From: Macrostomum hystrix
Taxonomy: Eukaryota; Animalia; Platyhelminthes
Direction: 5' to 3'
Length of the DNA: 64,000 bases
Assembly (NCBI GenBank): GCA_950097015.1
Contig: CATNEN010000011.1
Coordinates: forward strand, 62,001-126,000
Part shown: piece by piece, positions 7,119 to 61,651 of the stretch
How the letters are laid out: each line of letters begins with the position of its first letter
Position numbering within the stretch: position 1 is the stretch's first letter
Translations under genes and position numbers: made by a program
The notes under the pieces: generated by a model
What the model saw: the letters and a program-made list of their open reading frames with translations, nothing else
What the model was told of the DNA's origin: nothing
The model's database searches: none

Positions 7119-7213
7119 TTAGTGACCAGCCAGACACAAAGAGACACAACGGGACAATTGGCGAGCAAGGCGAGCAACGCGCGGGAGGCGCATAGCGAAA
7201 AAGCGACCTCCAA
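7119..7213 (-). repeat. Ngaro-1 split direct repeat B2 (95 bp; partner B1 7486-7580)
   Basis: ttagtgaccagcc...gacctccaa occurs at 7119 and 7486; one substitution seen (gcatagc vs gcacagc). Confidence 0.95.
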
Positions 7214-7297
7214 GCTTTGTATTTTTTTTTAACGGGTTACAAAGAATTGAAAAAGGTAATATTTGTATTCGAGTTAAAAGCAGAAATTGAATTAAAA

Positions 7298-7449
7298 AAA
7301 ACTCAAGCGGAGAGCTGCGCGCAAATTGAATCCGAAAACGTGGTGAGAGGCTCACCTAAAAAGGCTAGCAGGCGGCGGGGGTGGGGGACGGCCCCACCCG
7401 ACACAGATGCACAGAGACAGCAAGGGGGCGGGCTGATCACTAAAGCCGG
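7298..7449 (-). repeat. Ngaro-1 split direct repeat A2 (152 bp; partner A1 11378-11529)
   Basis: aaaactcaagcgg...taaagccgg repeated at an offset of 4080 bp, apparently identical. Confidence 0.95.
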
Positions 7450-7621
7450 TTTGCACAGGCGCAAGCACCCATGCAAACCAAAGCATTAGTGACCAGCCAG
7501 ACACAAAGAGACACAACGGGACAATTGGCGAGCAAGGCGAGCAACGCGCGGGAGGCGCACAGCGAAAAAGCGACCTCCAAACCCCAAAGCGAGCAAGCGA
7601 ACAAAAGCAGAAGGCTGGGAG

Positions 7622-8607
7622 CTAAAACAAAGCAGAGACACCGCGGGCAAAAGTCACAGCAGCCTCCGCTGTCTGGTGAAACCGGGGGAGATAACGCTGC
7701 ACAGCTTCACTTCTCCAGTCACCAATGCGCATGATATCAGCCACTGGGAGGCCCAGCACAGACGCCCAGGTAGCTCCTCCTCGTCGCAGGCTGTGCGCGG
7801 AGTAAGATTCTGGTCGAACGCCGACTGCGGCAAACTTGTCACGGAGGAAGCAGTCCAGGTGCCTCCCAGTCAGCAGGCGCAAGCCGCCACTTCCGTCGGC
7901 GTAGGACCAGAGTGGTGACTCTGCTGACTTCAATTCGTTGGCGCGGATGTGTCGCTCGACTGCGCTAACCGGGCACAGGGCACGCTGCCGCGCCAATCTC
8001 GGCAGCAGTACCAGGTGGCTGCGCTCCTTGAACTGGATGGTCTTGCCGAACTCGCAGCGCAACACCAGACCCTTCGGATGCTGAAGCAGGTCGGCGCGCC
8101 GGGAAAGGGCCGGGCCCTTGCCAGTTCGTGGCAGAAAGCTGGACTTTCGCAGCATTCCCCACCAGCAGCAGATGGTCACAGCCCAGCAGGCCAGCTGCAG
8201 CCTGTCGGTCTCGTCAACTAGTCGTCGCATCTCCGTCAGCATTGTAGGCGACACAGGCCGCTTTCGGTTCACGCGCAGTCCGAGGACTCGTTTAGCGCCG
8301 CGAAGGAGAAGAACCGCTGAAGCGTGCTTAGTCAGGTCCGGCGACGAGTTAATTCGGAACCAGAGCGACAGAGAGCTGTAGACTGCCGAGATGCTGCTGT
8401 AGGCATGTAGCCGTGTGCCGATCAGACTGGCCAAATAGTTCAACAGGCTCGTGACGTTGCAGGACACTGGATCGCAGCCGGTTTGGCGGCAGAACTCCCG
8501 CCACTCACGGACGTGTCTGTTGACTGCCTGCGCCGACCTCGGTGCGTACGCAGCGCCTAGCAGCGATGTGGCGCGGCTGCTAAGAGAGTCTGACGCAGCT
8601 GGGCGGC
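7622..8607 (-). CDS. Tyrosine recombinase of Ngaro-1 (no nearby ATG; start placed at putative splice acceptor)
   Basis: Motifs WWGMLRKS (R), EFGKT (K), SAHSLRRGGA (HxxR), GDWRS (W), QRYL (Y); frame stays open upstream of 8467 to a TAA just before ttttcag. Confidence 0.9.
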
Positions 8608-10260
8608 CTGAAAATTAAGAAATGAGGCGGTCGCCAAGCCAAAAGCATGCTGATACAGTGATTGTAGAATGCTTGGGCATATAAAACCATACAAGCGGAG
8701 TAAAAAGTTTAAAAGCTGGCCTCGCTCATGCAACCGCGAGGCAGCGTCCGCAAAAATTTGAAAATCACCAGGCACATGAAACGCGCGAATGCTCATTCCA
8801 AAGCGCAAACACATCAGGGCCACCGTCTGCAGCAGCCGCTGCAACGCAGGACACTTTGAAACGCCTTTGTTGATGATGTGACAGGCCGTCTGGTTGTCGC
8901 AGTAGATGCTCACCTTGCAACCTTTGAGCACATCCCTCCACCTCATCACTGCCAGCAGAGGGACCAACGCTGCCTTGTAGTTGATCGGCAGGTTCGCGAA
9001 GGCTGATCCTGCATCCTTCTCCCAGTCCAGGTAGCACCAGTCAAACAGACCATCCTGGTCACGCAGCAGCGCCGCACCACCTCTGCCGCACGCATCGGAT
9101 TCCATCGCCACAACTCGATTGTAGCTCGGCCACAGCTGCACCCATCGGCACGCCTGCAACGCCACCTTCCACCAGTTCAGCTGACTGCGTAACCCGGAGT
9201 CGACCAGCGTTCGCTGTCCACGCCGTAAGGTGTTGCACCGCTCAATCAGCTCACGCAAGAAGGTCCTTCCGCAACTGATGACCTGCGCTGCCCACCCCAA
9301 CTTGCCAATGACCTGTTGGAGGGCCCGCTGACTAATCCTCACCTTGGCTAACTCGGCACCAACCAGGTTGATCAACTTCCTCGCCTTCTCATCCGGCAGC
9401 TTCTTGATTCCTTCCACAGTGTCGAACTCAATTCCAAGGAATGACATCCGCTGCGCCGGCGGCTGACATTTGGCCGGGTTGACGGTGAATCCCAGCCGAG
9501 TCAGCAAGTAAATCAGATCGACGTAGAAGCGCTGGCAGTTCTCCTGCGTCCCGCAGTAGGCAAAGTCGTCCAGGTAAGACTCGGTGTTGATGAAGCCTCT
9601 GCGCACCATCATCAGATGAATCGCATTGCTCAGGCGCTGAAAGCACGTGACCGAGGCTGCCGCCCCGAACGGCAGGCGTGTATCGAACATGTAGGTGGGA
9701 GTGGCGCAGCCAGGAAACTTGAACTTGAGACCGGTGTTGACGAAGTCTTCTGGGTGCACTCCACATGCGCGGTATGCTTCACTCAGGTCAACTTTAGTCA
9801 TATAGCAGCCTCTCGTTAACTTACTTGCGAAGTTTTCAGCGCTTGAAAACCGCAACTTCTCATTGCTCTCCCAGTGCGCGTTCACCGACAGATTGTCCGG
9901 CCGACTGCAATCGTGAATTAGACGTACCCGGCCGTCATCCTTCGGCAAGGCTCCCAGCGCACTCACAATCCGAGGCCGCCACCCATCCGAGCACCGACGG
10001 TAGCGGTCAAGGCGAATTTCCCTCAGAATTTGCGTTTGAACAGCTTCAGCGTAAACATTCACAGATTCATAGTTGCTGACCTCGACAGACTTCAGGTTTT
10101 CTCGCTGCACATTCGTAATCCGAAATCCCTCAGACACACCATTCAGGATAAATTGCTTTCTGTCCAGCGGCAGATCGATCGACTCCAACTCTTCCGTCCA
10201 TGCCTCCAGCTTCAGGTCAGTTGATAAAACAGAGGAAGTTAAAACCGGATCGACGCGCAG
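8557..10260 (-). CDS. Reverse transcriptase-RNase H of Ngaro-1
   Basis: RLIHDCS, KVDLSEAY, LPFG, YLDDF, FLGIEFD; RNase H motifs ESDAC, YCDN, ADAASR (expected Glu reads as Ala in NYKAAL). Frame open from 10260, directly after the ORF1 TGA. Confidence 0.93.
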   Translation of the reverse strand: MRVDPVLTSSVLSTDLKLEAWTEELESIDLPLDRKQFILNGVSEGFRITNVQRENLKSVEVSNYESVNVYAEAVQTQILREIRLDRYRRCSDGWRPRIVSALGALPKDDGRVRLIHDCSRPDNLSVNAHWESNEKLRFSSAENFASKLTRGCYMTKVDLSEAYRACGVHPEDFVNTGLKFKFPGCATPTYMFDTRLPFGAAASVTCFQRLSNAIHLMMVRRGFINTESYLDDFAYCGTQENCQRFYVDLIYLLTRLGFTVNPAKCQPPAQRMSFLGIEFDTVEGIKKLPDEKARKLINLVGAELAKVRISQRALQQVIGKLGWAAQVISCGRTFLRELIERCNTLRRGQRTLVDSGLRSQLNWWKVALQACRWVQLWPSYNRVVAMESDACGRGGAALLRDQDGLFDWCYLDWEKDAGSAFANLPINYKAALVPLLAVMRWRDVLKGCKVSIYCDNQTACHIINKGVSKCPALQRLLQTVALMCLRFGMSIRAFHVPGDFQIFADAASRLHERGQLLNFLLRLYGFICPSILQSLYQHAFGLATASFLNFQAAQLRQTLLAAAPHRC

Positions 10261-11366
10261 TCAGTGCAGAGGCCTGCTCACCTCAGCACCGTCATCCCTG
10301 TGCGCCATCGCCGCTGAGTGGCCAAGTCCACAACGCCGGCACCGATGAGCGAAACGGCAGTTCCACCTTGAACATCCAGTTTCCTTATTGAAATCAAAGC
10401 AGGGTGGCTGCAGGCTTTGTCTTGGCACCCGGTCAACTCTGGCAGTCGGTGCACTCTGTGGGGCCATCAGGTAGGTGGCAACTCGACCAAGGTCGGATCC
10501 GCGCAACTCCCATGACGTCTCGCCATCTTCACTCAGTCTGCACTCGTCATCAAACCTCATGACTCGAGCCTTGTCGAACCCGAGGTCAAATAGCTCACCA
10601 ATGCGCGCATTGTAGCGCAGGTAGTCTCGCAACTGTGACACATCAGGCTGGCCGCCCAGCCCGCTCTTCACCAACCTGCCATCATCCAGCAACTTCAGCA
10701 TGATTCGAGCATTCGCCGAGATCCAGTCTCCAAACGTCAGCGAGTCAACAACAGCTTTCCTCACTCTGAAGGTGACTCTTCCGGATTTGTCAATGGACTG
10801 AGTAACTCCTGCTTCCTGCTGCTTCCGCTTGTTAATAAACTCAGGTATTCGGTACACCTTGCCTACAAACCGACTGGGCTCTTGCTGGGCAGCATCTTCA
10901 TCGTCAGACCACAGGTTAATGAGCAACTCACAGGGATTCTTTGACGTCGCAGGCCTTCGCTGAAGTTGGCTGACTTCTGCCTGAAGTAGAGCGGCCTCCT
11001 TGCGTAGCTTTAGCAGTCGGAGCTGCTTCTCAGCCTCCACCAGCTCGTCGTCCAGGCCGCCAGCCGCGTCAGACTCTTGACCATGTTGTACCGACTCGTT
11101 CGCGATAGAAGGCAGTTGCCTCTCCGCCATACCGCCGTCTCTTCTCATACGCGTCGTCACTGCGGCAGCTTCATCTTGCTCCTCGTCCTCGTCGTCCGCA
11201 TTCTCAAAGTCGGAGGCGATACCCTCGAGGTGCGCCCTCAGCCGCAGTAAAAGTTCACATTTTTTGCCTTGTGTTGAAAGCCCTAGGCTCTGAAGCTTCT
11301 GACGTAGCGCCCTTACAGTGGTAGGCGCTTCGGATGCAAGTGGCTCGTTAGAGTTTGGCATGATTG
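10261..11366 (-). CDS. Ngaro-1 ORF1 (gag-like) with N-terminal SAP-like motif and C-terminal Cys/His knuckles
   Basis: 372-aa ORF in track; TVRALRQKLQSLGLSTQGKKCELLLRL is SAP-like; C-terminal CFDFNKETGCSRWNCRFAHRCRRCGLGH. Confidence 0.8.
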
Positions 11367-11538
11367 TGCGAAAAATCAAAACTCAAGCGGAGAGCTGCGC
11401 GCAAATTGAATCCGAAAACGTGGTGAGAGGCTCACCTAAAAAGGCTAGCAGGCGGCGGGGGTGGGGGACGGCCCCACCCGACACAGATGCACAGAGACAG
11501 CAAGGGGGCGGGCTGATCACTAAAGCCGGCTGATCACT

Positions 11539-23829: not shown

Positions 23830-26800
23830 TGGTGGCAGCGGTGCGGGCTCTAACCACCCGTACAACTTGCGCTCTAAAGACGGAGCGCCTGGTGAAGACT
23901 GTGAAGACACTACTGAAGAAGCCAGCGGAGTGCTGGAGCCGGTTTCACTGGAGGGCGCGAATCTAATGGAAAGCATGAAGTTTCTTCTGACGCACCAGAG
24001 TCGGCATCTTCAGGAATTGACTCGCGCGCAAGAGAGACAGTCAGCGTTCTACATGGATCAACTGGCGCGTCAGCAGGCGGAGTTCACGAGGCTGCTTGCC
24101 GAAGCCAAGCAACGGCCTCCAGCGGCGGAACCCAAGCTATTTAAGCTGACGGACTCTGATGACATCGAAGCATTCCTGATGACCTTCGAGAGGACTGCCG
24201 CATCGTGTGGATGGTAAAAGTCGGAGTGGACGATCCGGCTGGCACCGCTCTTGACAGGCGTCGCGCAGAGTGCATTCCACAGTCTGACGACAGCTGCGAG
24301 CGCGGACTACGACCTGGCGAAGGCGACTATCCTAGCGAGGTACGACATCGGCGAGGAGACCTACCGACAGCGATTCTGGTCTCTGCGGAAGTCACCCGAA
24401 GAGTCCTTCCAGGTGTTCGCAACGAAGCTGGAAGACCTGTTTGACCGGTGGATGACAGCTGGACTGGACGAGGACCAAAGAGAGGCGCTGTTAGGAGATG
24501 ACCCCATCGTCAAGCAGAAAGTGCTCCTGGAGCAGTTTACAGAGTCTGTGACAAGGGGACTGCAAGTGTGGATGCGAGAGAGAAAGCCGAAGAACATCAA
24601 AGAGGCTGCGAATCTGGCCGATGACTATGCAATGGCAAGGAACAACGACAAGACCGGTGGAACACCAGGACACCCGAACCAGAAGACTGCGGAAGGGGCT
24701 ACTGTGCCCAATGCTATCGCCCGACAAAGGACAGTTCAACGACCGCAAAGTCTCAAGCCTCCGAACAGCTGCTTCAATTGTGGAGGCCCCCACAAGAAGT
24801 TTCAGTGTCCCAACAAGCCTTCTAATGTCCACCTGGCCTCAGAAGCAAGAGCTATGGATGGGGCCTCGGACAGGTTCATCACCGGACAGGCAGACGGCAT
24901 GGAATTGCGATTCCTGTTGGACACAGGAGCAGATCGAACCACGATCCGACGCAGCTGCCTGCCTGAGCACATCAATTGGACAGGACACCACGCACTATTG
25001 CGCTGCTTTGGGGGCGACCTACACCGCCTTCCTATCGCTAAAGTGGAACTGCACCTAAACGGCTACACAGGAACTACCGAAGTCTGCGTGTCCGACTCAC
25101 TCCCAGTAAGCGCTTTGGCTGGACTGGATGTGATTAGCCGACTCCAGCCAGGGGTTGGAGGCACCCCTAGCACAGGACCCGGAGGAGAGGCGCGCAAGGG
25201 GGCTAAAGGCCTACCCCTCCCAGCCAATGAGAGTGAGGGGGTGGGTGCGCCACACCACCCAAAACCCCAGTTAAAGGGGGACGAGAGACTTCACGTGGAA
25301 GACATTGTGGCCAGCGGCCTAAACCAGATCGATCCGGAACCGGCTAATAAAGCAAAACCGAGAATGACTAGAGCGCAGGTGCGTAAACATCAGCGAGAGT
25401 ACAACAAGGCTAAACAGGAAACAGCAGTGCGCCCTGTGGCATTAGATTACCAGGCAGCCCTACTAGACGACAGTGAGCTTCAGGCGGCAGTACAAACCAG
25501 CGCATTGATAGCAGAAAGCAACGGCAGATTGTATCGACGTCAAGCAGTCGGCGAGGACCAACTGGTGCTTCCGAGAGCGTTGCGTGCTACGGCGCTGTCT
25601 CAGGCCCATGAGAGTGCGTTCGCTGGGCACCTGGGAAGAAAAAAGACCTATCAACGATTGGAACAGCGATTCTGGTGGCCGACAATGACCAAGGACGTGA
25701 AGGACTTCGTAGCAACGTGCGACAAGTGCCAGAAGACGGCTCGAATCCCGAGCAGCCACCGGGTGAAGCTTGTGCAAGTGCCTGGAGTGGAGGAGGCCTT
25801 TACACTAAAGTTGTCATCGACATCAGCGGGCAGTATCCAAGGACGGCGAGCGGTCACCAGTACATCCTGTCGGTAATCGATGCGGCTACTCGGTTTCCAG
25901 AAGGATTCCCACTGCGCAAGATCGACGCGGAGTCTGTGGCCAAGGCATTGATGGACTGCTTTGTGAGGACCGGCTTCCCGAAGGAGATCCAGAGCAACAG
26001 AGGCACTAACTTCTCCTCGGCACTGTTGCAAGCCCTGTACCGGTGCACCGGAGTGGAAGGCATCCAGTCGACACCGTACCACCCGCAAAGCCAGGCGCTG
26101 GTGGAGAGGTTCCACGGCACGCTCAAGACTATGTTGAGGCGGCTGCCAGCTCGCGAGAAAAAGAGGTGGGACCAGTACCTGCCTTATATACTGTTTGCCA
26201 TCCGAGAGGTGCCTAACGAGACAACTGGTTTCTCCCCTTTCGAACTGTTGTATGGACGGACCGTACGAGGACCGCTAGACTTGCTGCGACAGACCTGGGA
26301 CGAGCAACTCACCGAAGAGAAGAAAGACATCATCTCCTTCGTGCTGGCCAAGAGAGATCGGCTGCGTGCCGGTCAGGAAGCAGCACGAAGCAACGAAGAC
26401 GTAGCCCGGAAGCGCCAAAAGAGCTCTGGTACGACCGGAAGTCGCGGGAACGAGAGCTGAAGCCCGGGGATCAGGTGCTGCTGCTGTTGCCATCGACGGC
26501 CAAGAAGCTCCACGCTGAATGGCGCGGCCCCTATGAAGTACTGGAGAAGTGCGGCGACGTGAACTACCGGATCCGGATTGGCACGGCAACCAACACGTTC
26601 CACATCAATCTGCTCAAGAAATACAACGAGCGAGAGTAGATTCTGATGCAGCTGTCAGCAGCAACGCCGGTTGCTCCTGCGCTCTCCGACCGTCTGAGCC
26701 GAGACGAGAGGGACCGTCTCCAGCAACTGGTGCAGGGCTTCGCGAACGTCTTCAGTGAGATGTCGGGTAGGACCGACCTGGTGGAGCACCGAATCCGGAC

Positions 26801-28075
26801 GACACCGTGTTGTGCGCATCCGGCCGCGACGGGAGCCGCAGGCGCATCGACAGGTGCTCCAAGAGGAGATCCAACGCATGCTGGATCTCGGAGTGATCGA
26901 ACCGTCGGACAGTGACTACTGCTCCCCGGTCTGTCTAGTGGCCAAGAAGGACGGCTCGGTCCGATTCACGGTCAACTTCAAGGCGCTGAATGAGCTGGTG
27001 GCTTTCGATTCCTACCCAATGAAGAACATCGAGGATCTGCTGGAGCGAGTCGCCAAGTCCAAGTTCATATCCAAGCTTGATTGCTGCAAGGGCTACTGGC
27101 AGATTCCTCTGTCCGAGAACTCGAAGCGGCTGACGGCATTCGCGGCCGGTGGCAAGCTCTACCAATTCACCGTAATGCCCATGGGCTTAAACTGCAGCAG
27201 CGCAACGTACCAGAAGCTCATGGACAAGATGTTCCAAGGGCTGGGCAACGCAGACTCATACGTCGACGACATCGCCGTGTTCAGCGAGACCTTCGAGCAG
27301 CACGTCCACGACCTGAGAGAGGTGTTAGGACGCCTCCAGGCTGCCGGTCTGACGGTGCAGCCACGCAAATGCTACCTGGGCGGCAACTCGGCGGACTACC
27401 TCGGCTTCAAGCTCGGCGGAGGCCAGATCGGCACGAGCGAGGATCGAGTGCGGACTATCACGGCACTGGCTCGACCCCAGACCAAGGCCCAGCTGCGATC
27501 AGTGCTCGGAGTGCTCAATCACTACCGTCGGTTCGTGCCCGGCTACTCTGACAAGGTGGCAGCCCTGACTGACCTCACGAAGAAGTCGGCGCCCGAGGAC
27601 CTAAGAGCGGCCTGGGGAGAACAACAGACTCGAGCCTTCGAGACAGTAAAGTCTCTGCTGGCGAGCGAGCCGGTACTACGCGCGCTGGATTACAGTCGGC
27701 CATTCATTCTGGAGAACGCAAGAGTTCTCCAGAGTTCTCCTTCTGGTGCGGTGTTAACGCAAGAGTTCGAGGACGGCCACCATCCGGTGCTATTCGTATC
27801 GCGGCGTCTGACTTCGGCGTAGCGGAGCTATGCGACGATCGAGAAGGAGTGCCTTGCGGTGCGCTGGGCGGTCGAGAAACTGCGCCACTACCTGCTCGGC
27901 CGCCGGTTCGTCATCAAGTCGGACCACAAGCCGCTGCAGTACCTGCAGATGGACCACACCAACCCGCGGCTCCAACGGTGGGCCTTCTATCTGTCTGGCT
28001 ACGACTACGAGATCCGGTACCAGCCAGGCAGAAGCAATGCGGTGGCCGACGGTCTCAGCCGCATCTGGACTGATT
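23822..28075 (+). pseudogene. gag-pol of Gmr1-like element (SCAN-like gag, zinc knuckle, protease, integrase, RT, RNase H), broken
   Basis: In-frame TAA at 24215-24217; SCAN-like ETYRQRF...LEQF...WMRERKP; CFNCGGPHKKFQC; FLLDTGA; HESAFAGHLG...CDKCQ; IDAATRF...SNRGTNF...ERFHGTLK; KLDCCKGYWQ; YVDDI; several frameshifts and a TAG near 27820. Confidence 0.9.
23830..23843 (+). promoter_or_regulatory. Primer binding site, probably tRNA-Leu
   Basis: tggtggcagcggtg directly after the LTR is complementary to the typical eukaryotic tRNA-Leu 3' end (CACCGCTGCCA-CCA). Confidence 0.7.
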
Positions 28076-29892: not shown

Positions 29893-30893
29893 TTAGATTG
29901 AGCGCCCAGGCGACGCGCCAGCCCATGCACGGCTGCCCTTGCATCCGAGTCCTGCATAGACAGATAGCGAAACAGAGCCGCTCTTCCAGTCACCTAGCTG
30001 CTTGATTACTGGCAGAGGAACACCGAGCTGCATCGCCGTCGTAGCGCCGCCACGCCGCAGCCCGTGGCCTGTGAAGACACGCGGCGAAAAACCTGCCGCA
30101 GCGCACAGAGTTCGGAGGCGGCCATCGAAACCGCTAGCTGTCAGGGCCGTCCACCGGTTCGCCGACCTGGTCGCAAAAAGATGAACAGGACCAGGGGCTT
30201 GATCCACCAGGTTGGCGGCCAGCTGCTGCTTCAGTGCTCGGTACGGGCAAATGGCCTCTAGCCCGCCATCCGGAAGCTTCGGAAGAAACACACGCTGAAC
30301 TCTGTCGCCAAACTGGTTCGTCTTGGAATGCTTCACTACCAGCTCACAGTCGCGCTCCGAGAAGGTGACACTCAACCCTGACAAATCGCGCACCAGATCG
30401 AGCTCCCCTACCTGCGTGGTGACATTCGCCTTTCGCAGCATTCCCCACCAGGCCGTCAGAATCGCCGACCAGAAAGCGATGTCTTTGCGTGATTTCTGGT
30501 CAAGATTGGCGTGCAGCTTGAGAAGATCGGCGACTCGGATTGGCTCCTTCGAGTGCTGTTGTCGACCGAAAAACTGGCGAAGGCCGCGAAGCACCCACTT
30601 GACCATCGGTGTCTCGCACGGGTCCTGCCGACCAATCGCTCTGAAGTACAGAGAGACTGCGTTCGCATACGCATGGCAACTGCGGAAAGCGGTTAGCCGA
30701 TTGGACAGCTCAGCCAGGTATTCAGCCACGTGTACCGGCTGCGCTCGGGCTGGTGTCAAGCGCTTGGAACTGCAGAAATGCAACCAGGACGCGAGCTGCG
30801 ACCGGTAACTCCGCTTCGTGTGGGGAGCGAATGCATTGCCGAGGAGAAATGCGCAGCGCTGGCTGAGGCGGTCGGGAGCCTGGCGCGGAGGGC
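29893..30893 (-). pseudogene. Tyrosine recombinase of Ngaro-2, frameshifted just before the catalytic Tyr
   Basis: WWGMLRKAN, HSKTNQ, TGHGLRRGGA, GDWKS; cgc tat ctg (RYL) lies in another frame near 29965. Confidence 0.85.
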
Positions 30894-30997
30894 CTGCAAA
30901 AAGAGAAACGCAAAAGAGAAGCAGAACGGCAGAAAGCGTGGCTTGCAATTTCAGTAGCGCTACAGTTAACTGTTCCATATACACGAAATAAAAAGTC

Positions 30998-31791
30998 TCA
31001 CATCTTGCACACAGTGTGCAGTCTAGAGCACGGATCTGAGAAAAGCTGGTACCAACCAGGCACATGAAACGCACGAACTTCGACACCGCGCCTAACTGCG
31101 ATTAGCATGGCAGTCTGAAAAAGCGGCTGTAACTCAGACTTGCGGCAGCAACCTCTATTAATCATGCCGACAGCGGCGCTTGAGTCAGAGTAGAACACCA
31201 CAGAACTATTATTAAGCAAAGCACTCCAGCGCACCATAGCCAGGAGAGGAACAATGGCTTCTTTGTACGTAATATGCATGGCCTTGAACACTCCTGCGGC
31301 ATCCAGTTCCCAGTTGACGTACAGCCAATCAACCATGCCGTTAGCATTACGCAAAATAGCGCCACCACCAACACTGCTGGCATCCGTCTCGATGACCCAG
31401 GAATTCGAATGACGCCTCCAAAGCTGAAACTCAGGAAACTGCAGAAGGGCGCTACGCCACCAGAATAAAATACGCACGGTGTCAGCGGACACGCGGATCT
31501 TGTGATGTGGCTTTTGAAGAGCATTTAGCAATTCGAACAGGGGCCTGAGGAAACAGCTCCCAGAATGCACCACCCGAACGAACCAACTGAGCTTGCCACA
31601 GAGCGATGAAAGCTGGCGCTTCGAGAGGCGCCTACGCTGCGAGAAGCTAAGCAGAGTATCGCGCAACACCTCACACTTCTCAGCCGGAATTCCGAGGACG
31701 CCACGCACGGTATCGATCTTAACTCCGAGGTACACCAGACATTGAGTTGGCTCCACCAGCTTGCTCCAGTTGACGCCAAATCCGAGTTCGC
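30998..31791 (-). pseudogene. 3' half of Ngaro-2 RT plus RNase H
   Basis: RELGFGVNWSK, YLGVKID, IETDASS, YKEAI, FYSDS; joins 37230-38013 as R-L-V-R-E once the insertion is removed. Confidence 0.9.
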
Positions 31792-32358
31792 GTACCAACC
31801 AAAGATTATTTATAGACAACTAGATCGCCAAACCCCACACCCCAAATTGTCGAAAATCTGACGCGCGGAAGTCTCACTATTGGCTGGCACGAAAGTGCAT
31901 TAGCGAAGCTCTGACCTCTCATTCAATGTACATGCTTAGAAGCTTCTAGGCTGCTCCTCTATTTTCCAATTGAAGTTGCATAAAATTAGCATAAAAATAG
32001 TGAAAAAATAATTCAGAGCGCTAGCGCCGTTCTTTTAAAAACATAAAATTGAGCTATTCAATAAAAAAGTTGAGACACTTTTATATTTTATTTGATAGAT
32101 TGATACAGGAATGCATTGATACAAAATAACGTTCAAAGAAGCACGGGCAGTATAAAAACTTAAATACCGAAGCATTGAAAAATAACTTTGCTTTTAATAA
32201 TCCACACGTTGTATTTAGAGAACCAGTGTTTCGATGCACAGAATAAAGTGAAATTACATGCAATGCACAACTATAAAAAACATAAATGCTGTACATGTAG
32301 CAAAAAATGTAGCAAAAAACTACCCGATAGAGCCTTATGCAAAAGACAGAAGGGACTG

Positions 32359-33750
32359 CTACTGGCCAAGAAAAATAATTTTCTTGGTTAGAGAATGGTG
32401 CACAGACCGTTTCGTAGCAATGTTGAGACTGCGAGCCGCGTGAGACAAGCGAATAAAAACGAATTTCTGGACAATCATGCGAATCAGATGGTACCTGTGG
32501 TTCTCATCAGCTGCCTCAATGCAGGCCAAGCTTGTGAATACACCTTGAAAAACTGCGGCACTCACAGAAGCATTGATCAACTTGTCAATTGTCACGCTGC
32601 TGAATGTCGCCAGCGAAATGCTCCTCCGGTGCTGCTCGCAGGTCTGCACACACTTGCAAAGGTCGGCTGAGGGTGCGAACAGACCACCACGATCCTTGAT
32701 TTGGGCGAGCCGCACGGTTTGCGTCTCAGCAACCAGAGCTTCCTTGCACGACATGCACTGCAGCTTCGTCACAATTTGCCGGCCAATGTAGCCAGCAATG
32801 TATCCCGCAATGTTGTGACCGATTACAGACAATGTCGCAATAGATGGAATCGGACAGGGAGGACAGGGAATCGGGTAGTTAGTAGGGTGCGCAAAAATTG
32901 AAACTTAAGCAACCTTTCCTTAAATTCGGTGAAATTTTCTGAATTTCAGTTCGCATCTTGCATGGGTCAAATTTCTGGATGCGAATTTCAAAATCTGCCT
33001 GCGTATGCACCCTAATCACGTAAAAACACAGTGTGTATTGAGTATACATTATGCTGCCCATGCCAGCAATGCAGAATTGAAGACAAACTTACCTTGAATT
33101 GAAAACGTCAAACATATGGTCCATGTTGCGTATGAAGGTCACGGTGGCTGCGCATCCGGCAAAGTCTGCTGAGCCAGCATCTCGCAGAAATTCCATTGCA
33201 TCAGCCACAGAAGAGCTGAGAGTTTGCACTGCCAAGGAGACGCGCATTTTGTGTCGTTGCCATTCCAGATGCTTGCTGCTCAATCGATTTGCCAGCCTTC
33301 CGCCTTCGTCTAGCTGATACTTGTGAAGCAGCTGCACATATTTCCAAGAAATGGTCCCTCCGTCGTGCACGAAGGTGCCCAGGTCCGACCATGAGTTTCT
33401 AACCAGCTTTATTAGATGGCAGTTGTCAAGGAAAACATGCACTGCATCGGTTTGACATTGAAGGAAGAACTTGGGCTGCTCGGGGATTTTCGCTCCCAGC
33501 AGTTTAAACGTAGATAAGTTCACGGAGGCACAGTCACTTGCTACAGCTCGAACAGTTGCACCAGATTGATTGAATTCCTTGATAACGTCAGCGATTAGCT
33601 GTGATTGATGCCGTGGAGTAACGCCAGCAGGTAAAATGTATGCCACGGGAATCTTCCAGGAGCTGCACATTCCCACTGCCAGAATAACCACTGCCTCTTC
33701 AGCAGTAATTTTTCATGTGCTTGTAAAGTATCCATAATTTATCAAACCAT
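32359..33750 (-). pseudogene. P-element/THAP9-like transposase fragments
   Basis: WDGLINYG..AEEAVVILAVG..WKIPVAY, VRAVASDCASVN, DNCHLIKLVRN, KMRVSLAVQTLSSSVA, DHMFDVFNSR (donor at 33092); C-terminal YIAGY..KLQCMSC..IKDRGGL..PS; in-frame stops upstream of 33700. Confidence 0.85.
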
Positions 33751-33769
33751 CCCAAATTTAAAATTTTAT

Positions 33770-34092
33770 GGCAAAATGAAAACAGTATGCTTATAAATGG
33801 TCAATGGGCAGTATAAATAACTGTAAATAAATAAAACAACTATAACTAAATTATATGACTATATTTTATGATATAAAATTATAAATGAAAGCAATAATAA
33901 AAGCATAATTTCCATATAAATAATTATGAATAAGAAATATATAGTGAAATATAATGATAAGGCAAAATAATAACAATATGCTTATAATGGTCAATGGGCA
34001 ATATAAATAACTGTAAATAAATATAACAACTATAACGAAATTTTATGACTATATTTTATAATATAAAATTATAAATGAAAGCAATAATAAAA
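33770..34092. repeat. AT-rich local duplication (about 190-bp period)
   Basis: tatgcttata...ggtcaatgggc...gaaagcaataataaaa at about 33781-33902 and 33972-34092. Confidence 0.8.
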
Positions 34093-34707
34093 ATAAATAT
34101 TAGGCATATTTATCCTAATTATTTTAATAATTATAACCATTTAATTATAATTATAATCATTTCCATTTTTGCTTAAATCGTTCAACCTGTAAGGTGTATG
34201 AACAGCAAAATAACATTTTGATGAAGTGGCTATCGACAGTTTTGAACAATGTCCGACGCTTTGAGTTTGGTTCACAGCAGGAATACCCACGCTTTCTATT
34301 CAAAATTTAACCCCTTCGTTTTTGACCAGTTTTTTATTTTGTGTAATCCTGCCTGTGACCAAATATGGGTTTGCCAATAACGATTAGGCTGTAAATATTC
34401 AGCTGAATTCTAAGGCACAATAGTTCACTGCAAAGTCGTATCTGATGGTTTCACGTACCTGTGGGTGTTCGACTGTTCATTGAATAGTAGGCTTCTCAAA
34501 AGTCTCATTTTCAATGGCAGCAAACAAAATCGGAGCGGCAAAGTATTTGTTTTGTTTTGCACTGCTTCATATCGTTCTCCCTAAATTCCTCAATTGCTTG
34601 ACTGTCTCCAGTACTCGTACGAGTAATTTAAAAAGTGATTTCTTTTTTTTTTATTTGCTCGAAAGTGTTCTATTCGTTTGATTAAGTACGAGTTTTGTTT
34701 TGTGTAG

Positions 34708-35518
34708 TATCAATGTAACCGTTAACCGCCGTGGTGGCGGCGTCCAAGGTGGCGGCCGAGGCGGCGGTGGCGGCGTCCACGGTGGTGGCGGCGGCGGTGG
34801 CGGCGTCCGCGATGGTGGTGGCGGCTACGGCGGCCGAGGCGGCGGTGGCGGCGTCCACGCTGGTGGCGGCGGCGGTGGCAGCGTCCGCGGCGGTGGTGGC
34901 GGCTTCGGCGGTGGCGGCGGCGGTAGCGGCTACGGCGGTGGCGGCGGCGGTGGCGGTTACGGCGGTGGCGGTCAAGGCGGCGGTGGCGGCTACGGCGGTG
35001 GCGTCTACAGCGGTGGCGGCGACGGCGGCGGTGGCGGCCTAGCGCCTTTCGGTGGCGGCTACGGCGGCAGTGGCGGCTACGGCGGCGGTGACGGCCGAGG
35101 CGGCGGTGACGGCCGAAGCGGTGGCGGCCGAGGCGGTGGCGGCTACGGCAGCGGTGGCGGCGGCGGCGGCGGTGGTGGCGGCGACCGAGGCGGTGGTGTG
35201 CGCCGTGTTTGTGGAGGTGCCAGCGCTGGCCGTTTATGTTAGTTTTCCATTTAGTTATCATTTGAATAGAGAATTTTTTTCATAGAGTGCATGGGTTTCT
35301 TTCTTTTTACTTTGGTTTTTTTATTTGCAGTATGCCATCGATGTTGCGGTCTCGGGCATGTTGCCCGAGACTGCAAAAAGAGAAGCCGCAGCCGCAGCCG
35401 CAGCGGCGCCCGCTGTGAAAACAGCAGCCGGCGCCATAAAAGCAGCAGTAGCAACAGCAGCAGCAGCAGTAGCAACAGCAAAAGCAGTAGCAGCAGCAGC
35501 AGCAAAAGCAGCAGTCGC
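34708..35518 (+). CDS. Spliced cargo ORF: Gly-rich region, CCHC zinc knuckle, RS/Ser-rich tail
   Basis: Exon about 34708-35237 (GGC-rich), 93-nt GT-AG intron, exon 35331-35518; phase-1 splice keeps the frame to CHRCCGLGHVARDC then KKRSRSRSRS; next donor gtaagt at 35519. Start not identified. Confidence 0.65.
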
Positions 35519-35737
35519 GTAAGTTTCAGCGTTCGAACAGAATTATATATTTTGTATTTAAAAAGGCAATAAATTTTCATATTACAAATGTAAGGTAATC
35601 CTCTTCAGCAGGAGCAGCCCCAGCAGCAGCAGGAGCAGCCCCAGCAGCAGCAGCAAGAGCAGCCACAGCATCAGATAAGGCCAAAGCAGCCCTGCGTCAT
35701 GCAGTAGGGGCAAAATTGAAATTGTTTAACAGAATAA

Positions 35738-36072
35738 GGGAATAGCTGATGGGGAATAAGGTAGTAGCTGATTGGGAATAATGTAGTAGCTGATTGGGAA
35801 TAAGGTAGTAGCTGATTGGGAATAATGTAGTAGCTGATTGGGAATAAGGGAGTAGCTGATTAGGAATAAGGTAGTAGCTGATTGGGAATAAGGTAGTAGC
35901 TGATTGGGAATAAGGTAGTAGCTGATTGGGAATAATGTAGTAGCTGTTTGGGAATAAGGGAGTATAGCTGATTGGGAATAAGGGAATAGCTGATTGGGTT
36001 TAAGGGAATAGCTGATAGGGAATTTGGGAATAAGGGAATTGCTGATGGGGAATTTGGGAATAAGGGAATTGC
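35738..36072. repeat. 22-bp minisatellite (gtagtagctgattgggaataak)
   Basis: About 15 tandem copies, degenerating to the right. Confidence 0.9.
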
Positions 36073-36421
36073 TGTGGATATTATTTTGGCGCAGGCCTGT
36101 GTTTGGCAATCCATGTGCCTCTGGATTTAAAAATGAGGTAATAATTTTGCCAACAGTATACTCTGTGCAGTTTATGCAAATGCAGACTGTGGGTATGCAG
36201 TTGTCGATATTTACCGTTAAGTAATAAATAAACAGCATAAATAACATGCTGCTATTTACCGTAACAGCATGTGGATTCTTATGGTTTGCATTTTCCCTCA
36301 ATCTACTTTCAATTTATGAGTCATTAGCTGTGCTGTTAATGGCTTATTTAAACTTTTCAGGCAAGAAATTTTGGGCAAAATACTCTGCTCTCTCATCTCA
36401 ATGAAGATCACATCTTCATTA

Positions 36422-36976
36422 CTAGCCTAGTCGGTTGCTAACGATTTGGAGCTTAACACTAACTGACAGAGCTCTTCTCTTGCACTTCAGAGTTGCAGCA
36501 TATTTCTTTGCTCGATTTACAAGCTTTCTACTGAGTGTGCGTTTCCGCACGCGATTCACCTTTAGCTGCTGCTTCTTCCTCTTTTTCAACTCCATCAGCG
36601 TTGCTAATTTGCGCTCCTCATACGTTGGATCCAATGAATAGTGGTGCAAAGTCGGCATCTCCGGCTCCTGGTTGTATGGGTGGAGGACCGGAGGCTCCAC
36701 TTTCCATTCTAAGTTTGGAATGGCTCCTGGACGAAGGCGCTTGCGACTTTTGCCTGGCGACTTTGCACCTTGTGAGACAACTATGTAGGACGTTGGACTA
36801 AAATGCAGATCGCAAAGATAGTTCACCTGACTTTCCAGAAATCCTGGGCGCGTTTCCACATTTGCTGTCCACTGCCTTCGAAGCTCTTGTTCATTCGGGT
36901 ATGCAAAAAATGATCGCTCTGGGTCGCCTTGAATTGATGTGCAGTTTATTGCAGAACACTTTCGATGTTTCTACAT
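36422..36976 (-). pseudogene. THAP DNA-binding domain exon of the P-like transposase
   Basis: Reads M*KHRKCSAINC...YPNEQELRRQW...YLCDLHF...RLRPGAIP (C2CH THAP signature); TAG at codon 2. Confidence 0.85.
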
Positions 36977-37229
36977 TCTTCGCTTCAGTTAGTCAGAGCA
37001 ACGAGCAAAGCGAATGAATCCACTGGCAATCGATTCTTGACTTTGCGCTAGTTTAAGAGGGGGTTTGTGGGGTAAGGAAAGGAAGGAAAGGAAGGAATTT
37101 GGTGGTGGGGGTGGCCCAGCCAATAGGAGAGAAGTGACCGCTTCGTGGGTCACATTTTCGACAAGTCCTCAGTGTACATTGGGGACACAGCGGCAATCTA
37201 GTTGTCTATAAATAATATTTGGTACCAAC

Positions 37230-38013
37230 CTGATCAGCTCGTTAAGGGCCTTCATGCACTCCTCCTTACTCTCCGCGGCAACCAGAAAGTCATCTAGGTA
37301 GACTGACACGTTGCTATGGCCACGCCGCACCATCATTCTCTTGACCGCCTGGGTCAGTCGGTAGAAAATCTCGACCGAGGCGCAGCTACCGAATGGCAGC
37401 CGTGTGTCAACGAGCCACGTCAGGTCTTGACTGCCTTTAAAACGCCACCCAATGCCAGTTGCCTGATAGTCGTCCGAGTGAATAGCAACACTTCTGTAGG
37501 CGTGGGAGAGATCGAGCTTAGCCATAAACCAGCCTTTTGCAATTGAAGACGCGACTTCCTTGACGGACTCGAACTTTGGGCTGAGCTTTTTCGAATAGTT
37601 GTCATTAACCGAGCAGCCTATGGGCTTGCTGCAGTCGTGAATAAGGCGAACTTTCCCATTGTCTTTAGCAATGGCGCCAAGAGGGCTCACCATAGTTGGC
37701 TTCTCGGCAACCACCAGATATCTACCATTGTCGATCTCCTCTTTAATCTGCAGCTCAACAGCACGATGATAAGCATTGGTTGACATGTAATTAGCATGAA
37801 AAGTTTCCTGAAGCACTTCGCCATCAGTAATGCGAAAACCATTAGCGATGCCATCTAAAATAAAATCGCGATCCGGATCATCCAACAGCTCCGACTTCCA
37901 CGAACAAAAACGCAGACTAGCTCCTCCACTCTGAGCAGTTGGATTGATAAAATTGATATTAAGCCGCTCACATGACGGGTTCTCGGGATTAAAATTGGGC
38001 ACCGCCGCTATTA
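37230..38013 (-). pseudogene. 5' half of Ngaro-2 RT
   Basis: DPDRDFILDGIANGF, RLIHDCS, KLDLSHAY, RLPFG, YLDDF. Confidence 0.92.
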
Positions 38014-39133
38014 GTTTTTTGTGGGGTGGTTGGCCTCCGGGTGGGCCTCAAAGCAGATGCGGTAGACGTGCCGGAATTTGCAAATTGACCGGAAGCAGCC
38101 CCTGCGGTTGAAATGCAAGCAGATTTACTCCCCGTCTGGGGTCCTGAGGCTCCTGGGGTCTATTGGCTTCTCGTTCTGAAAGCGCTGCTGCCGAGACTGC
38201 GATGCTGACTTATTTGCTGCCGGATTGGCAGGAGCTCCGGCTTTAATCAAATGCATCGCCACAAACTGAAAGGACTCCTTGCCCCAGCGCATGCCGGTCT
38301 CGGCCTGTTTGCAGCGATAGTCTTCGTCAAATCAGTTCACCTGAGCCAGGCTGAAGCCAGCCTCGAACAGCTCGCCAATCTGGATCGAATAGCGCAGATA
38401 ATTCATCAAATTGGTGGCATCAACAGATCCGTCCTTTTCAATCACTAAATCTCCATCCTTGATCATCTGCATCATCAGTCTGCAATTGCCGACCATGTAC
38501 CGCGCTGCTGAGATACTGTCAGGGCTCGGCTTTCTGCTCTTCTAAGTAATTCGCCCTCCGGCTCCATTAGCTAGGACCTCTTCCTGCTCAAAACCATCCA
38601 AGAAGTCGCGAATCAGAAAAACTTTGCGCCGGCAAGGGCACGCGGCACTCGGATTCGCCCTGTCCTGTAACAGCAGTCTTTCCAGCAGCTCATTGCGATT
38701 CTCTTGCTCTTGTTCCTGATAATCCCGCAATTCAAAGAGGCAATCAGGGTCAACAGGTCTGGTAAACTCACTGCGGCTATTCGACTGCGCGGTCGGACGC
38801 TCGCCTTCCACGCTGCCGATCTCCTTCCTCAGTTGAGCAGCTTCTTTGCGTAGCTGAAGCAGTCTGATCTTCTTCTGCGCCTTCGCGATGTCTTCGTCCA
38901 GGCCCACCGCCGACTCCCGAGCCGCCCCAGCCACGATCTCGTCATCTGCATTCGATCCTGTTGAGCCCCGCTCCAAGTTTTGCAAGACCTCTCTCTGTCC
39001 ATGACTGGTCCGGAGCCGCTAGTAGGGCGCTGACGAGTTCGGTCTTGTTACCGCGATTGCTAACATTTGCGCGTGTGCACAACGCTTGCAAGGCCGCCTT
39101 GCGAAGCTGCAGTAAGCTCTCACGGTCAGCCAT
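38011..39133 (-). pseudogene. Ngaro-2 ORF1 (gag-like), with stops and a frameshift
   Basis: ATG at 39133 (MADRESLLQLRKAALQALCTRANVSNRGNKTELV, SAP-like); similarity to Ngaro-1 ORF1 (LRKEAA, YLRY..IGELF, terminal C..C...H...C); TAG/TGA in frame. Confidence 0.8.
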
Positions 39134-56170: not shown

Positions 56171-57622
56171 AACTTCAGGCTCAATAATAAAAATAATAAC
56201 TCATTGAACACTAAAGCTATAAAGAGTTAACCTAAAAAACTATTTACTGTATCTCTAGATTGGCCCACAGAAAATTCACAGAATGCTCAATCGTCTACCC
56301 GCCTGGCCTTTGGCCCGGCATCTCTCCCGGTTTTCATCCGCTTCCATCCGATTTTTGTACAATTTGCGGTCGAATAACATTGACCGGATGAAATCGTCCG
56401 GTTTTGTCCCGGATTTTGTTACCGGACCAAGAACCGGCAAGAAAAGCGGAACAATTGTCCGCCCGTCAAGAAAAATCAACCGGTTTTCATCCGCTTTTGT
56501 CTCCGATCTGTTGTCCGGCTAAAAACCGGACGAAAAAACGGCCATAAAACCGGATGAGTTCCGGATGAAATAATTTCAATTGCCCGCATTTTTGTCCGTT
56601 TCCTTCTCCGGTCGTTCGTCCGCCTGACTACCGGGCGAAAGGCGGACCAGAAATCGGGCGAAAACCGGTTAAACTTTCCGACGGCCTTGCCCTCCTACTA
56701 CTTACTTACTAAGTAGCTTTAGAATTCGTAAGGTATAGCGCTTTTCCAAATGATATTGGAAAATCAAGCAACTTACTTTTTGGTACTGTTCCGTCCCTCA
56801 ACATTTACATTTTTTGGTTCCCATTGGACTATTAACTCGTTAGTACATGAAGAACTGTAGTGTACTGATTTTTGAAATTTAAAAAGGTACGCAAGTTTGT
56901 GCAACAATTATAAAAGTAAGATCTGTCTGCGGTATTTAATTCAAGGATGTAATGCAATATGAATACCGGATGACATTTATTTTTGTTATTTGTCATACTA
57001 TAATTTACACATAATTGTGTTTCGTGTTTCATTCAGAATATTATTACTTTGATGCATTATTCATTACTAACTATATCCTCTTCCTGTTGGCCAGCGCTAT
57101 AAGGGTTGTTCGTCTCGTTTCGAATAAGCTCAGCTCTCGACTTGCTCATTTTACAATTCACTTAATTTAAAGCGTGTGCATGTAGGGCTAAAAGACAAGC
57201 AGCACCTGAATTAAATAGCTGATGACTTTATATATATCTTGCCAAAAAATTGCCTATATCTTGTCCATGTAGTCCAGGTGTGCTTGTGAGTTGGAAATAT
57301 ACTAGCTGTCATCATTGAAGTAAAAGTTCATAACCTTCTGCAGTCGCCAGGCTGGTGCCAGTGATCAATATACCGATATATCTATATGGATAACTCTAAG
57401 CTGCGCAGGCGACTGTATATGAAAGAGTACAGAGCCAGAGAAAGAATTTCTGCAGTCACTACGCCTAATGCTACAGGCACAAGGTCGCGCTCACGCTCCT
57501 TAATCCGTGCAGTTGAAGGCAGCTCCTCGTGCGCTGACGCAGGCGATGACGACGATGGCAGCTCCTCGCGCGCTGACGCAGGCGATGATGACGATGGCAG
57601 TTCCTCACGCGCTGACACAGGC

Positions 57623-60600: not shown

Positions 60601-61651
60601 AAACGCAAGCCAAAGTGGTAGAGGCATGTATTGAGAGTGTGCTTCTCTTCCACGCAAACGTGCGCCCGTTCCACATTTCGGAGATGAAAGCGCTGCAAAG
60701 GAGCGTAGATAAGATATACCGCTACATATGGAGCGCAAAGGAAATGGAGCCCCTACGCGAGATGGAACAGCGCGGATACAACATGCAAGACATCAGGACC
60801 GAACTCAATGTAGGGACGATCAGAATGAAGATCGAAAAAGCCCATCTGATACGAATGGGACGCGTCCTCAGGATGCCCGACGACCGACAGACCAAGAGGG
60901 CGGTCTTGGGTTGGTTCAAGGGCCTGGAACACCTACCGAAACCCAGAAGAAGGAAAAATTACACCATAAATTTCTGGAGAAAACTCGCGAAGGAAGGGGG
61001 ACTTGAACCGACAGAAGTCGAACGTCTCGCCAAAGACAGGAAAAAATGGAAGAGCTGGGTGGCCGAGAGGATCCGACACATTGAGAAGTGGGATCACAGC
61101 CAAGGAAAACGGAGCACCGGCCCCCCACCGGAAAGCCGGTGTGCCCCGAGGAGAGAAGAGTCGAAGACCAGCGGATTCCAATGCGAGTATGAAGGCTGTG
61201 GCAGAATTTGTAAATCGAAGGCAGGACGCGCGATACATCAAAAAAGGATGCACACACGACCGGTATCCCCGGTAAGGTTCACGTGCCCAAGATGCGCGGA
61301 ATCTTTCCTACAAGAAGCCACAAGCAAGAACCACATGAAAGTGTGCAGAGGAGAGAAAGAAACATCAGATGGTAAAATGGAATGTACTAGCTGCAACAGA
61401 GAAATATCGAAGTCGAACATGGCTCGCCACAGACCAGCCTGCAAGAACCCGATGGGACAAACGGCCGGGACACAGGCACAACCCGACAACGGAGTGGTGG
61501 CACGCAAGCACATCAGGAAGAGGAAGGACTGTGACAGGTGCGGCAGGAACCTAACGGCCACTAACATGGCCAGGCACCAGCGCACATGCACAGGAAATTG
61601 ACAGGTTCTCCAGGGCCCCATACCTCACGGTGACAAAGGGCGAAAGAAGAA
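57623..61651 (+). mobile_element. RTE-like non-LTR retrotransposon (APE-RT-zinc fingers)
   Basis: 9-bp TSD gacacaggc (57614-57622, 61652-61660); short aagaagaa tail; STWNV, GGDFNAQIG, SDHAP; NYRGICLL, GLREGCPTSP, FADD. Confidence 0.9.
57855..61601 (+). pseudogene. LINE ORF (2A-like, endonuclease, RT, four Cys/His fingers) with one in-frame TAA at 59334-59336
   Basis: Track ORFs 57507-59336 and 59349-61601 are in the same frame (offset 1842). Confidence 0.85.

Follow-up and report, generated by a model that had tools for sequence, protein, structure and literature searches.

A conserved phase-1 splice-acceptor signal at the start of the Ngaro recombinase frame suggests a spliced Gag-recombinase message in Macrostomum hystrix

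To our knowledge, the expression of the third gene in tyrosine-recombinase (YR) retrotransposons has never been settled. Ngaro elements carry a Gag-like ORF, RT/RNase H and YR in that order, together with split direct repeats (A1 ... B1-A2-B2); protease, integrase and methyltransferase are all absent, and the YR has been published as a separate ORF, possibly frameshifted or overlapping (PMC3783388, PMC8547959, PMC6681497). The Ngaro literature that we searched, a set without the original description by Goodwin and Poulter (2004), mentions no splice acceptor, Gag donor or Gag-YR fusion; it gives only overlapping or frameshifted YR ORFs, and spliced Gag-YR expression is undescribed in it. Here we analysed a 64,000-nucleotide stretch of Macrostomum hystrix DNA (the window) that holds two elements with the published ORF order and repeats; for these we propose an acceptor, a Gag donor and a Gag-YR fusion. 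We put the probability at about 70% that YR is made from a cis-spliced message that fuses the start and first domains of Gag to YR, a splice that we infer from the sequence features described below.

Both window elements are Ngaro-type YR retrotransposons on the minus strand. The features of the first (family 1) are as follows.

7119..11529, minus strand: full-length family-1 element, with limits set by BLAST alignment of further genomic copies to the one in the window
11378..11529, minus strand: A1 terminal repeat and start of the 5' leader, repeated as A2 at 7298-7449
10932..11361, minus strand: predicted coding part of exon 1, with 143 codons plus 1 base counted from the ATG at 11361 and covering the SAP domain, an acidic stretch and the coiled coil
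10926..10931, minus strand: proposed donor GTGAGT, phase 1, at Gag codon 144, after the SAP domain and coiled coil
10593..10598, minus strand: candidate donor GTGAGC of an earlier note on this DNA, phase 1, judged unlikely
10261..10263, minus strand: in-frame TGA between the Gag and RT frames, placed by frame arithmetic and kept in 7/7 copies
8557..10260, minus strand: RT/RNase H reading frame (Pfam RVT_1 in a 543-aa ORF)
8608..8630, minus strand: pyrimidine tract and CAG, the proposed 3' splice site (AG at 8609-8608)
7622..8607, minus strand: YR exon (2 bases followed by 327 codons and the stop; first in-frame ATG at codon 122)
7119..7580, minus strand: 3' repeats (B1 7486-7580, A2 7298-7449, B2 7119-7213)

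The features of the second (family 2) are the following.

38542..39133, minus strand: 5' part of Gag from the ATG at 39133, covering a SAP-like domain and a coiled coil; the window copy has one frame break
38766..38771, minus strand: GTGAGT, a candidate donor in phase 1 of the coiled-coil frame
37169..38002, minus strand: N-terminal part of RT (Pfam RVT_1, tblastn)
30998..31819, minus strand: C-terminal part of RT/RNase H (tblastn)
30894..30937, minus strand: long pyrimidine tract and CAG (AG at 30895-30894)
29893..30893, minus strand: YR exon (Pfam Phage_integrase and a SAM-like N-terminal domain)

The family-1 element sits inside a satellite array of 577/593-bp units. BLAST among genomic copies revealed its split direct repeats (A1 ... 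B1-A2-B2), and RT/RNase H is followed by YR. The family-1 YR can be aligned with relatives, which we drew from metagenome and Logan contigs, and it keeps the catalytic-region residues conserved across them, including the H-x-L-R-R-G-G block. Pfam gave no match to a protease or DDE integrase domain in the Ngaro elements, nor to a methyltransferase domain, RVT_1 being the only hit on the pol ORF, and the gap between RNase H and YR is too small for an additional ORF. The missing methyltransferase domain sets Ngaro apart from DIRS1 and PAT. The SAP domain encoded by family-1 exon 1 scores 28.8 bits against a Pfam cutoff of 23.9; the SAP-like match in family-2 Gag reaches 20 bits and lies under its cutoff. 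In family 2, a P-like transposon insertion splits the N-terminal part of RT from the remainder, and a second genomic copy has an intact Gag open frame of 431 aa.

We found that a 3' splice-site signal is present, at the sequence level, directly before the YR ORF. On the minus strand family 1 reads cctcatttcttaattttcag/gccgcc, with the cag at 8610-8608 and the exon starting at 8607, and family 2 reads ttctgcttctcttttgcgtttctctttttgcag/gccctc, with the exon starting at 30893 in phase 1. When ORF 8467..7622 is extended upstream, the family-1 YR codons start at 8608, 8605 and so on; thus the boundary behind the AG falls between the first and second bases of a codon (phase 1). The earlier note had claimed that a same-phase acceptor opens an ATG-less recombinase ORF in both families and that the two sites occupy equivalent positions. 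Both claims were confirmed: each family has a pyrimidine tract and CAG at the given exon start, each is in phase 1 of the YR frame, and in a protein alignment the exon starts differ by one codon. The exon starts also match the natural N-terminus of relatives that are called with their own start. By score, the acceptor ranks first among 284 AGs in family 1 and first among 124 in family 2, and acceptor-like sites of equal strength number about 6 in 80 kb of the window. The acceptor at the YR start is far above chance expectation. Furthermore, seven young family-1 copies and two diverged ones (L009 and L010) retain it. Family-2 copies vary by a 5-nt indel within the pyrimidine tract, indicating that the tract is non-coding in the YR frame.

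Conservation of the acceptor extended to other Ngaro elements, as site and phase are kept in every family examined in the genome. Across 14 independent elements, each offering 95-322 AGs, the acceptor was the top-scoring site in 10 and ranked 2-4 in the remaining 4. With a clear site defined as an acceptor score of at least 3, 29 distinct elements qualified, and the YR phase was 1 in 29/29. Among 47 metagenome loci from distantly related elements, the top site around the predicted N-terminus was in phase 1 in 39. The RT frame, taken relative to YR in the 29 elements, was -1 in 19, +1 in 8 and 0 in 2. Because phase 1 is constant while the RT frame varies, what is conserved is the YR phase and not an RT codon.

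These frame relations bear on the idea that YR is the tail of a Gag-Pol-YR polyprotein, reached without splicing by frameshifting or read-through at the RT/YR overlap, the tract being coding sequence for the RT tail. In its favour, family 1 has an RT/YR overlap at 8614-8557, in which the last 17 RT codons lie over the YR exon. The RNase H motif HVPG precedes the acceptor by 171 nt, and the RT stop follows it by 48 nt. The prevalence of the -1 relation also fits, and one family (L061) has RT-RNase H-YR as a single 916-aa open frame, so the route is possible for some elements. However, the X_XXY_YYZ slippery heptamer is absent from the family-1 overlap (8614-8560, RT frame), and folding of 8606-8510 gave no stable downstream structure (z = -0.43 versus shuffles). 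Elements with a +1 or 0 relation nonetheless have their CAG in YR phase 1, the family-2 RT stop falls 107 nt before the YR start with the 5-nt indel lying between the two, and most elements have in-frame stops 2-40 codons 5' of the YR start. Taken as the way in which YR is made, the polyprotein is improbable.

The YR frame mostly lacks a start codon near the acceptor. An in-frame ATG occurs within 10 codons of it in only 2 of the 29 elements, and the first YR ATG is mostly at codon 80-140. YR codons 1-120 are conserved at the protein level, and the region just 5' of the YR start contains frame-breaking indels or the in-frame stops mentioned above. For family 1, the earlier note had reported a stop just upstream and no nearby ATG, and both details call for correction. 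The window copy does have a TAA at 8617-8615, but this stop is confined to some copies and reads TCA in 5 of 7 young copies. An in-frame ATG does exist at 8680-8678, 72 nt upstream of the exon start, and the frame is open from it into YR in 5/7 young copies; in the window copy the TAA separates the two.

This ATG leads to a second possibility, that the tract and CAG have some other function in cis (for instance, binding a protein in internal initiation or in replication) or simply reflect composition, and that family-1 YR could start at ATG 8680 wherever the TAA is absent. The open frame in the young copies is consistent with such a start. On the other hand, the ATG reads GTG in the diverged copies L008-L010, has no equivalent in 20 of the 29 elements, and lies about 2.8 kb into the transcript with many ATGs ahead of it. 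Moreover, a binding tract alone would not predict an invariant AG, a constant phase and a matching phase-1 donor. We regard this possibility as highly improbable.

As a donor, the earlier note had put forward the GTGAGC at 10598 in Gag. This site had to be abandoned: it reads GGCGAG in 3 of 6 near-identical young copies, where a synonymous change of GGT to GGC removes the GT, and at the homologous codon a public relative (L071) lacks a GT. A candidate that fits better is the GTGAGT at 10931-10926, 333 bases further upstream, which all of 6/6 family-1 copies keep intact. Of these, the five outside the window carry the consensus G at -1 (cccG/GTGAGT), whereas a T at 10932 is private to the window copy. 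The phase-1 GTGAGT is shared by three SAP-type Gags, those of family 1, family 2 and L071, and in an otherwise poorly conserved linker the three align within two codons. The motif occurs once in family-1 gag and 18 times in 128 kb, counting both strands. In another element (L075), the phase-1 GTGAGT in Gag is the best donor among 500 GTs upstream of the acceptor. Across distant elements, the density of phase-1 GTRAG in Gag is about 1.8 times that in RT, a modest enrichment, and 7 of 19 elements have no phase-1 GTRAG within the called Gag ORF. With a generic donor matrix several GTs in RT outscore the proposed donor, but they are in phase 0.

Other family-1 donors were considered and rejected. 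GTAAGG at 11316, in early Gag, is strong but in phase 0, and there is no phase-0 AG near the YR start; joined to 8607, it would lead into the RT frame and a stop after 17 codons. The site at 11222 (GTATCG), right behind the SAP domain, is in phase 1 but weak and unconserved. The donor at 11435 (ttttag/gtgagc) belongs to a leader that, from 11529 to 11362, contains zero ATG in any frame.

The leader site is also part of a third possibility, in which the acceptor is real and is joined to a different 5' exon, either the leader or a trans-spliced leader, and YR starts at a non-AUG codon or, truncated, at the ATG of codon 122. Flatworms are a group with spliced-leader trans-splicing, which speaks for this possibility, as does the strength of the donor-like site in the family-1 leader. 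Several observations argue against it. The leader could supply no ATG, an AUG at the extreme end of a spliced leader would set the RT frame, which ends 17 codons later, and a start at codon 122 would lose the conserved domain in the first 120 YR codons. In addition, a leader exon leaves phase 1 in 29/29 elements unexplained. We therefore consider a different 5' exon quite improbable.

According to the preferred reading, that of a cis-spliced Gag-YR message, the full-length transcript would double as genomic RNA and Gag message, and in family 1 Gag-Pol would be made from it by read-through of the in-frame TGA. A fraction of the transcript would be cis-spliced from the phase-1 GTGAGT donor in Gag to the phase-1 CAG acceptor that opens the YR frame. 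In family 1 this would join the end of exon 1 at 10932 to the start of exon 2 at 8607 and take out 2,324 bases, comprising the C-terminal half of Gag and the entire RT/RNase H. Translation of the spliced message from the Gag ATG would yield a predicted product of 471 residues (143 from Gag, one from a split codon and 327 from YR). The fused N-terminus may bind DNA or chromatin via its SAP domain, and the coiled coil may allow oligomerisation of the recombinase, either with itself or with Gag, and so bring it to the cDNA complex. The choice of donor and the role of the fused N-terminus are likewise inferred. The window copy of family 2 is unable to make the fusion product because of its Gag frame break and inserted transposon. 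The suggestion in the earlier note of a spliced YR message that skips RT, perhaps as an ORF1-YR fusion, is partly supported: the conservation of acceptor and phase and a YR without ATG speak for it, whereas the donor given for it is replaced, and the splice itself stays a prediction.

We searched for spliced products in several collections. No Gag-YR fusion protein was found in large protein libraries when the two exons were queried separately, and the matches to the exon-1 protein were mostly unrelated SAP proteins. Likewise, no spliced contig was found among 80 metagenome loci and no spliced retrocopy among the genomic copies reached. Of the shortened copies, L019/L036 is deleted internally between 10502 and 7390, L023 is missing 527 bp flanked by CGAGTC microhomologies, and L058 is a YR-only copy in which the acceptor is still present. 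A YR with a 450-aa open frame at G000:C1:3359721-3360617 had no RT match in its vicinity.

Viewed across the group, it seems rather probable that splicing from a Gag phase-1 donor to a YR phase-1 acceptor is a clade-wide, ancient Ngaro strategy, with the recombinase always fused to the DNA-binding and oligomerisation module at the N-terminus of Gag. If true, the conserved splice would account for the frequent lack of a YR start codon. The active recombinase would then bear the SAP and coiled-coil module of Gag, which would change the design of expression constructs and assays, and annotators would gain a rule for predicting the true YR protein. Furthermore, the spliced RNA would retain both terminal repeat sets and could therefore be copied into short recombinase-only elements, suggesting a possible origin of the short recombinase-only Ngaro derivatives.

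The proposed arrangement can be compared with several known systems. Like the junctions used in programmed -1 ribosomal frameshifting, the RT and YR ORFs overlap and are related by -1 in most elements; unlike those junctions, they lack a slippery heptamer and a stimulatory structure, and their frame relation varies by family. The pol mRNA of foamy virus and the subgenomic RNAs of copia and BARE arise by splicing of the genomic transcript, which is used instead of frameshifting for gene expression or to set product ratio. Splicing of the genomic transcript as a route of expression is what we propose here as well. The products differ, however: foamy virus Pol carries no Gag portion, and in copia and BARE splicing removes pol and leaves Gag alone, unlike the proposed Gag-YR. 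In avian sarcoma/leukosis virus, the env mRNA is spliced from a donor in early gag to an acceptor before env, which has no start codon of its own, and the product starts with the Gag initiator and six donated Gag codons. The Ngaro elements would likewise join a gag donor to an acceptor before a start-less gene and use the Gag initiator. In contrast to the six codons of the virus, the Ngaro Gag would contribute about 143 residues with SAP domain and coiled coil, and its partner would be a recombinase, encoded by a non-viral retrotransposon, rather than an envelope protein.

The window elements satisfy the structural definition of Ngaro. Family 1 is complete, and family 2 is a broken copy in which a P-element/THAP9-like transposon interrupts the RT gene, thereby setting YR and the RT C-terminus apart from the RT N-terminus and Gag.

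Features of the two Ngaro elements and of neighbouring elements
11529-7119, minus: complete family 1 Ngaro, 4.4 kb
A1 11529-11378, B1 7580-7486, A2 7449-7298 and B2 7213-7119, minus: Ngaro-typical split direct repeats of family 1
ATG 11361 to TGA 10263-10261, minus: Gag-like ORF1 of family 1, N-terminal SAP domain
Ending at 8557, minus: RT/RNase H frame of family 1, Pfam RVT_1
Open from 8614 to 7622, minus: YR frame of family 1
29893-31819, minus: YR and RT C-terminal part of family 2 (broken copy)
~31900-37100, minus: P-element/THAP9-like transposon, ORFs 32359-32832 and 33089-33691 (Pfam TNP-like RNase H, GTP-binding insertion domain, THAP9_C)
37169-38002, minus: RT N-terminal part of family 2
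38542-39133, minus: Gag of family 2, one frame break
24251-27822, plus: Gypsy-type element, Gag with SCAN domain
51555-54770, minus: second Gypsy-type pol with RT, RNase H and integrase
57507-61601, plus: LINE with endonuclease and RT

The family 1 copy is enclosed by an extended satellite array with units of 577/593 bp (window 1-24000; several sub-variants, 60-100 % identity), where its insertion is visible as a jump of ~4,915 bp in repeat spacing. A pair of glycine/arginine-rich repetitive ORFs lies at 34700-35261. Elsewhere in the genome, the locus G000:C2:6768463-6772443 (L058) carries a family 2 YR in a full open frame, without RT or Gag upstream, and its homology begins ~35 nt upstream of the acceptor. 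We found that the family 1 Gag TGA (10261-10263, minus) shares its frame with the RT ORF, precedes a CTG and is retained in 7/7 copies, suggesting that Pol is probably made by read-through of this stop codon.

At the YR start of both families, a pyrimidine tract and CAG form a candidate splice acceptor, with exons beginning at 8607 (family 1) and 30893 (family 2). The acceptor sequences and coordinates in the earlier note were correct on re-reading, as was its assignment of phase 1, the CAG cutting a codon of the YR frame after its first base. Protein alignment placed the two exon starts one codon apart, in agreement with the equivalent positions proposed there, and both starts matched the N-terminus of distant relatives annotated with their own start. 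When every AG was scored by its pyrimidine tract, -3 base and +1 base, the YR-start site ranked first among 284 AGs in family 1 and among 124 in family 2. It was first in 10 of 14 independent elements (eight families of the same genome and six public contigs) and second to fourth in the remaining four. Acceptor-like sites matching the strength of the family 1 site occur about six times in 80 kb of the window. Among more distant relatives (80 metagenome loci, 24-37 % identity), the top site close to the predicted N-terminus was in phase 1 at 39 of the 47 usable loci. After deduplication, the 29 elements with a score of at least 3 all had the acceptor in phase 1 of the YR frame. The observation of an acceptor signal at the YR start holds, and it is far from random.

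In these 29 elements the RT frame relative to YR was -1 in 19, +1 in eight and the same in two. Because the RT frame varies while the phase of the CAG in the YR frame is constant, conservation of a glutamine codon in the tail of RT does not account for the site. The distance from the RNase H H-V-P-G motif to the acceptor CAG was 166-177 nt in nine of ten elements measured and 122 nt in the tenth (L076), and this near-constancy places the candidate 3' splice signal at a set position within the RT C-terminal tail. Ribosomal frameshifting into YR would leave the +1 and 0 frame relations unexplained, as well as the arrangement of family 2, where 107 nt separate the RT stop from the start of YR; moreover, in family 1 a slippery heptamer was absent and no downstream structure was found (fold z = -0.43).

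The YR ORF past the acceptor spans 317-371 codons in nearly all elements. An in-frame ATG lies within 10 codons of the acceptor in only two of the 29, the first YR ATG usually being at codon 80-140. Upstream of the acceptor, stops close the YR frame or indels interrupt it, one example being a 5-nt indel in the tract of family 2. The stop that the earlier note saw just upstream in family 1 is a TAA in the window copy but reads TCA in five of seven young copies, and its statement that no ATG is nearby overlooked an in-frame ATG at 8680. Translation of YR could start there; however, this ATG is not conserved, and in the window copy the TAA separates it from YR. One Ngaro family (L061, G000:C41:3647990-3651898) encodes RT, RNase H and YR in one open frame of 916 aa; its YR start nonetheless has a top-ranked acceptor in phase 1, and YR of this family may be made both as part of a polyprotein and by splicing.

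Since the acceptor is in phase 1, its donor should also be in phase 1 and downstream of an ATG. Two alternative sources of the 5' exon, a donor within the leader and trans-splicing of a leader, would both fail to supply an in-frame ATG. The donor proposed previously, at 10598, has the right phase, but GGC replaces GGT in three of six near-identical family 1 copies, and the homologous codon of L071, which is a complete element in a public read-set assembly (YR 47 % identical), lacks a GT; this candidate is probably wrong. A better one is the conserved GTGAGT at 10931-10926, intact in 6/6 family 1 copies spanning the site. Five of these read cccG|GTGAGT; the T at 10932 is private to the window copy. 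In alignment, this GTGAGT falls no more than two codons from phase-1 GTGAGT sites of family 2 (38771-38766) and L071, in an otherwise poorly conserved linker ~30-45 residues past the coiled-coil motif. GTGAGT is a rare motif, occurring 18 times in 128 kb (both strands), and exactly once in each of the window's two Gag genes. For L075, a distant element, the top donor among 500 GTs 5' of the acceptor was likewise a phase-1 GTGAGT in Gag. Over the 19 elements with callable Gag, phase-1 GTRAG density was 0.87 per kb in Gag versus 0.48 per kb in RT, and 12 had at least one such site in Gag; as GTRAG cannot stand in phase 2 inside an ORF, chance alone predicts about one half rather than one third. 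The donor evidence over these elements is only modest.

The comparative sequence evidence supports well, with a probability of roughly 0.7, the reading that YR is translated from a spliced Gag-YR message. The unspliced RNA would serve as genomic RNA and Gag message, and splicing would remove 2,324 bases (10931-8608) in family 1, joining 143 Gag codons and one base to two bases and 327 YR codons. The split codon would be TGC in the window copy and GGC in other copies, and the predicted product is a SAP-coiled-coil-YR protein of 471 residues, in which the SAP domain and coiled coil could plausibly supply the recombinase with DNA binding and with oligomerisation, with itself or with Gag. The spliced RNA would still carry A1 and B1-A2-B2, so copying of this RNA could in principle yield short recombinase-only elements. 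No Gag-YR fusion was found in the protein libraries searched, no spliced contig among the 80 metagenome loci and no spliced retrocopy among the genomic copies examined. Two family 1 copies carry internal deletions, neither of them at a splice site: L023 (G000:C32:843049-846304) lacks 527 bp of Gag, deleted between CGAGTC microhomologies, and in L019 (G000:C3:4432463-4435717) 10502 is joined to 7390, with RT and YR gone. At G000:C1:3359721-3360617 (+), a YR match lies in a 450-aa open frame, ~120 residues above the usual length, with no RT match nearby or upstream among the matches scored; this locus may have arisen by retrocopying of a spliced Gag-YR RNA.

Published descriptions of Ngaro give three ORFs, of which the YR ORF is possibly frameshifted or overlapping (PMC3783388, PMC8547959, PMC6681497). 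Splicing of Ngaro or DIRS transcripts was not mentioned in the literature searched, which did not include the founding Ngaro paper. Spliced messages are known from other retroelements: the donor of the ASLV env mRNA lies inside gag, so that Env begins at the Gag AUG, foamy viruses make a spliced pol mRNA, and copia and BARE have spliced Gag RNAs. These are the nearest analogues of the proposed Gag-YR splice.
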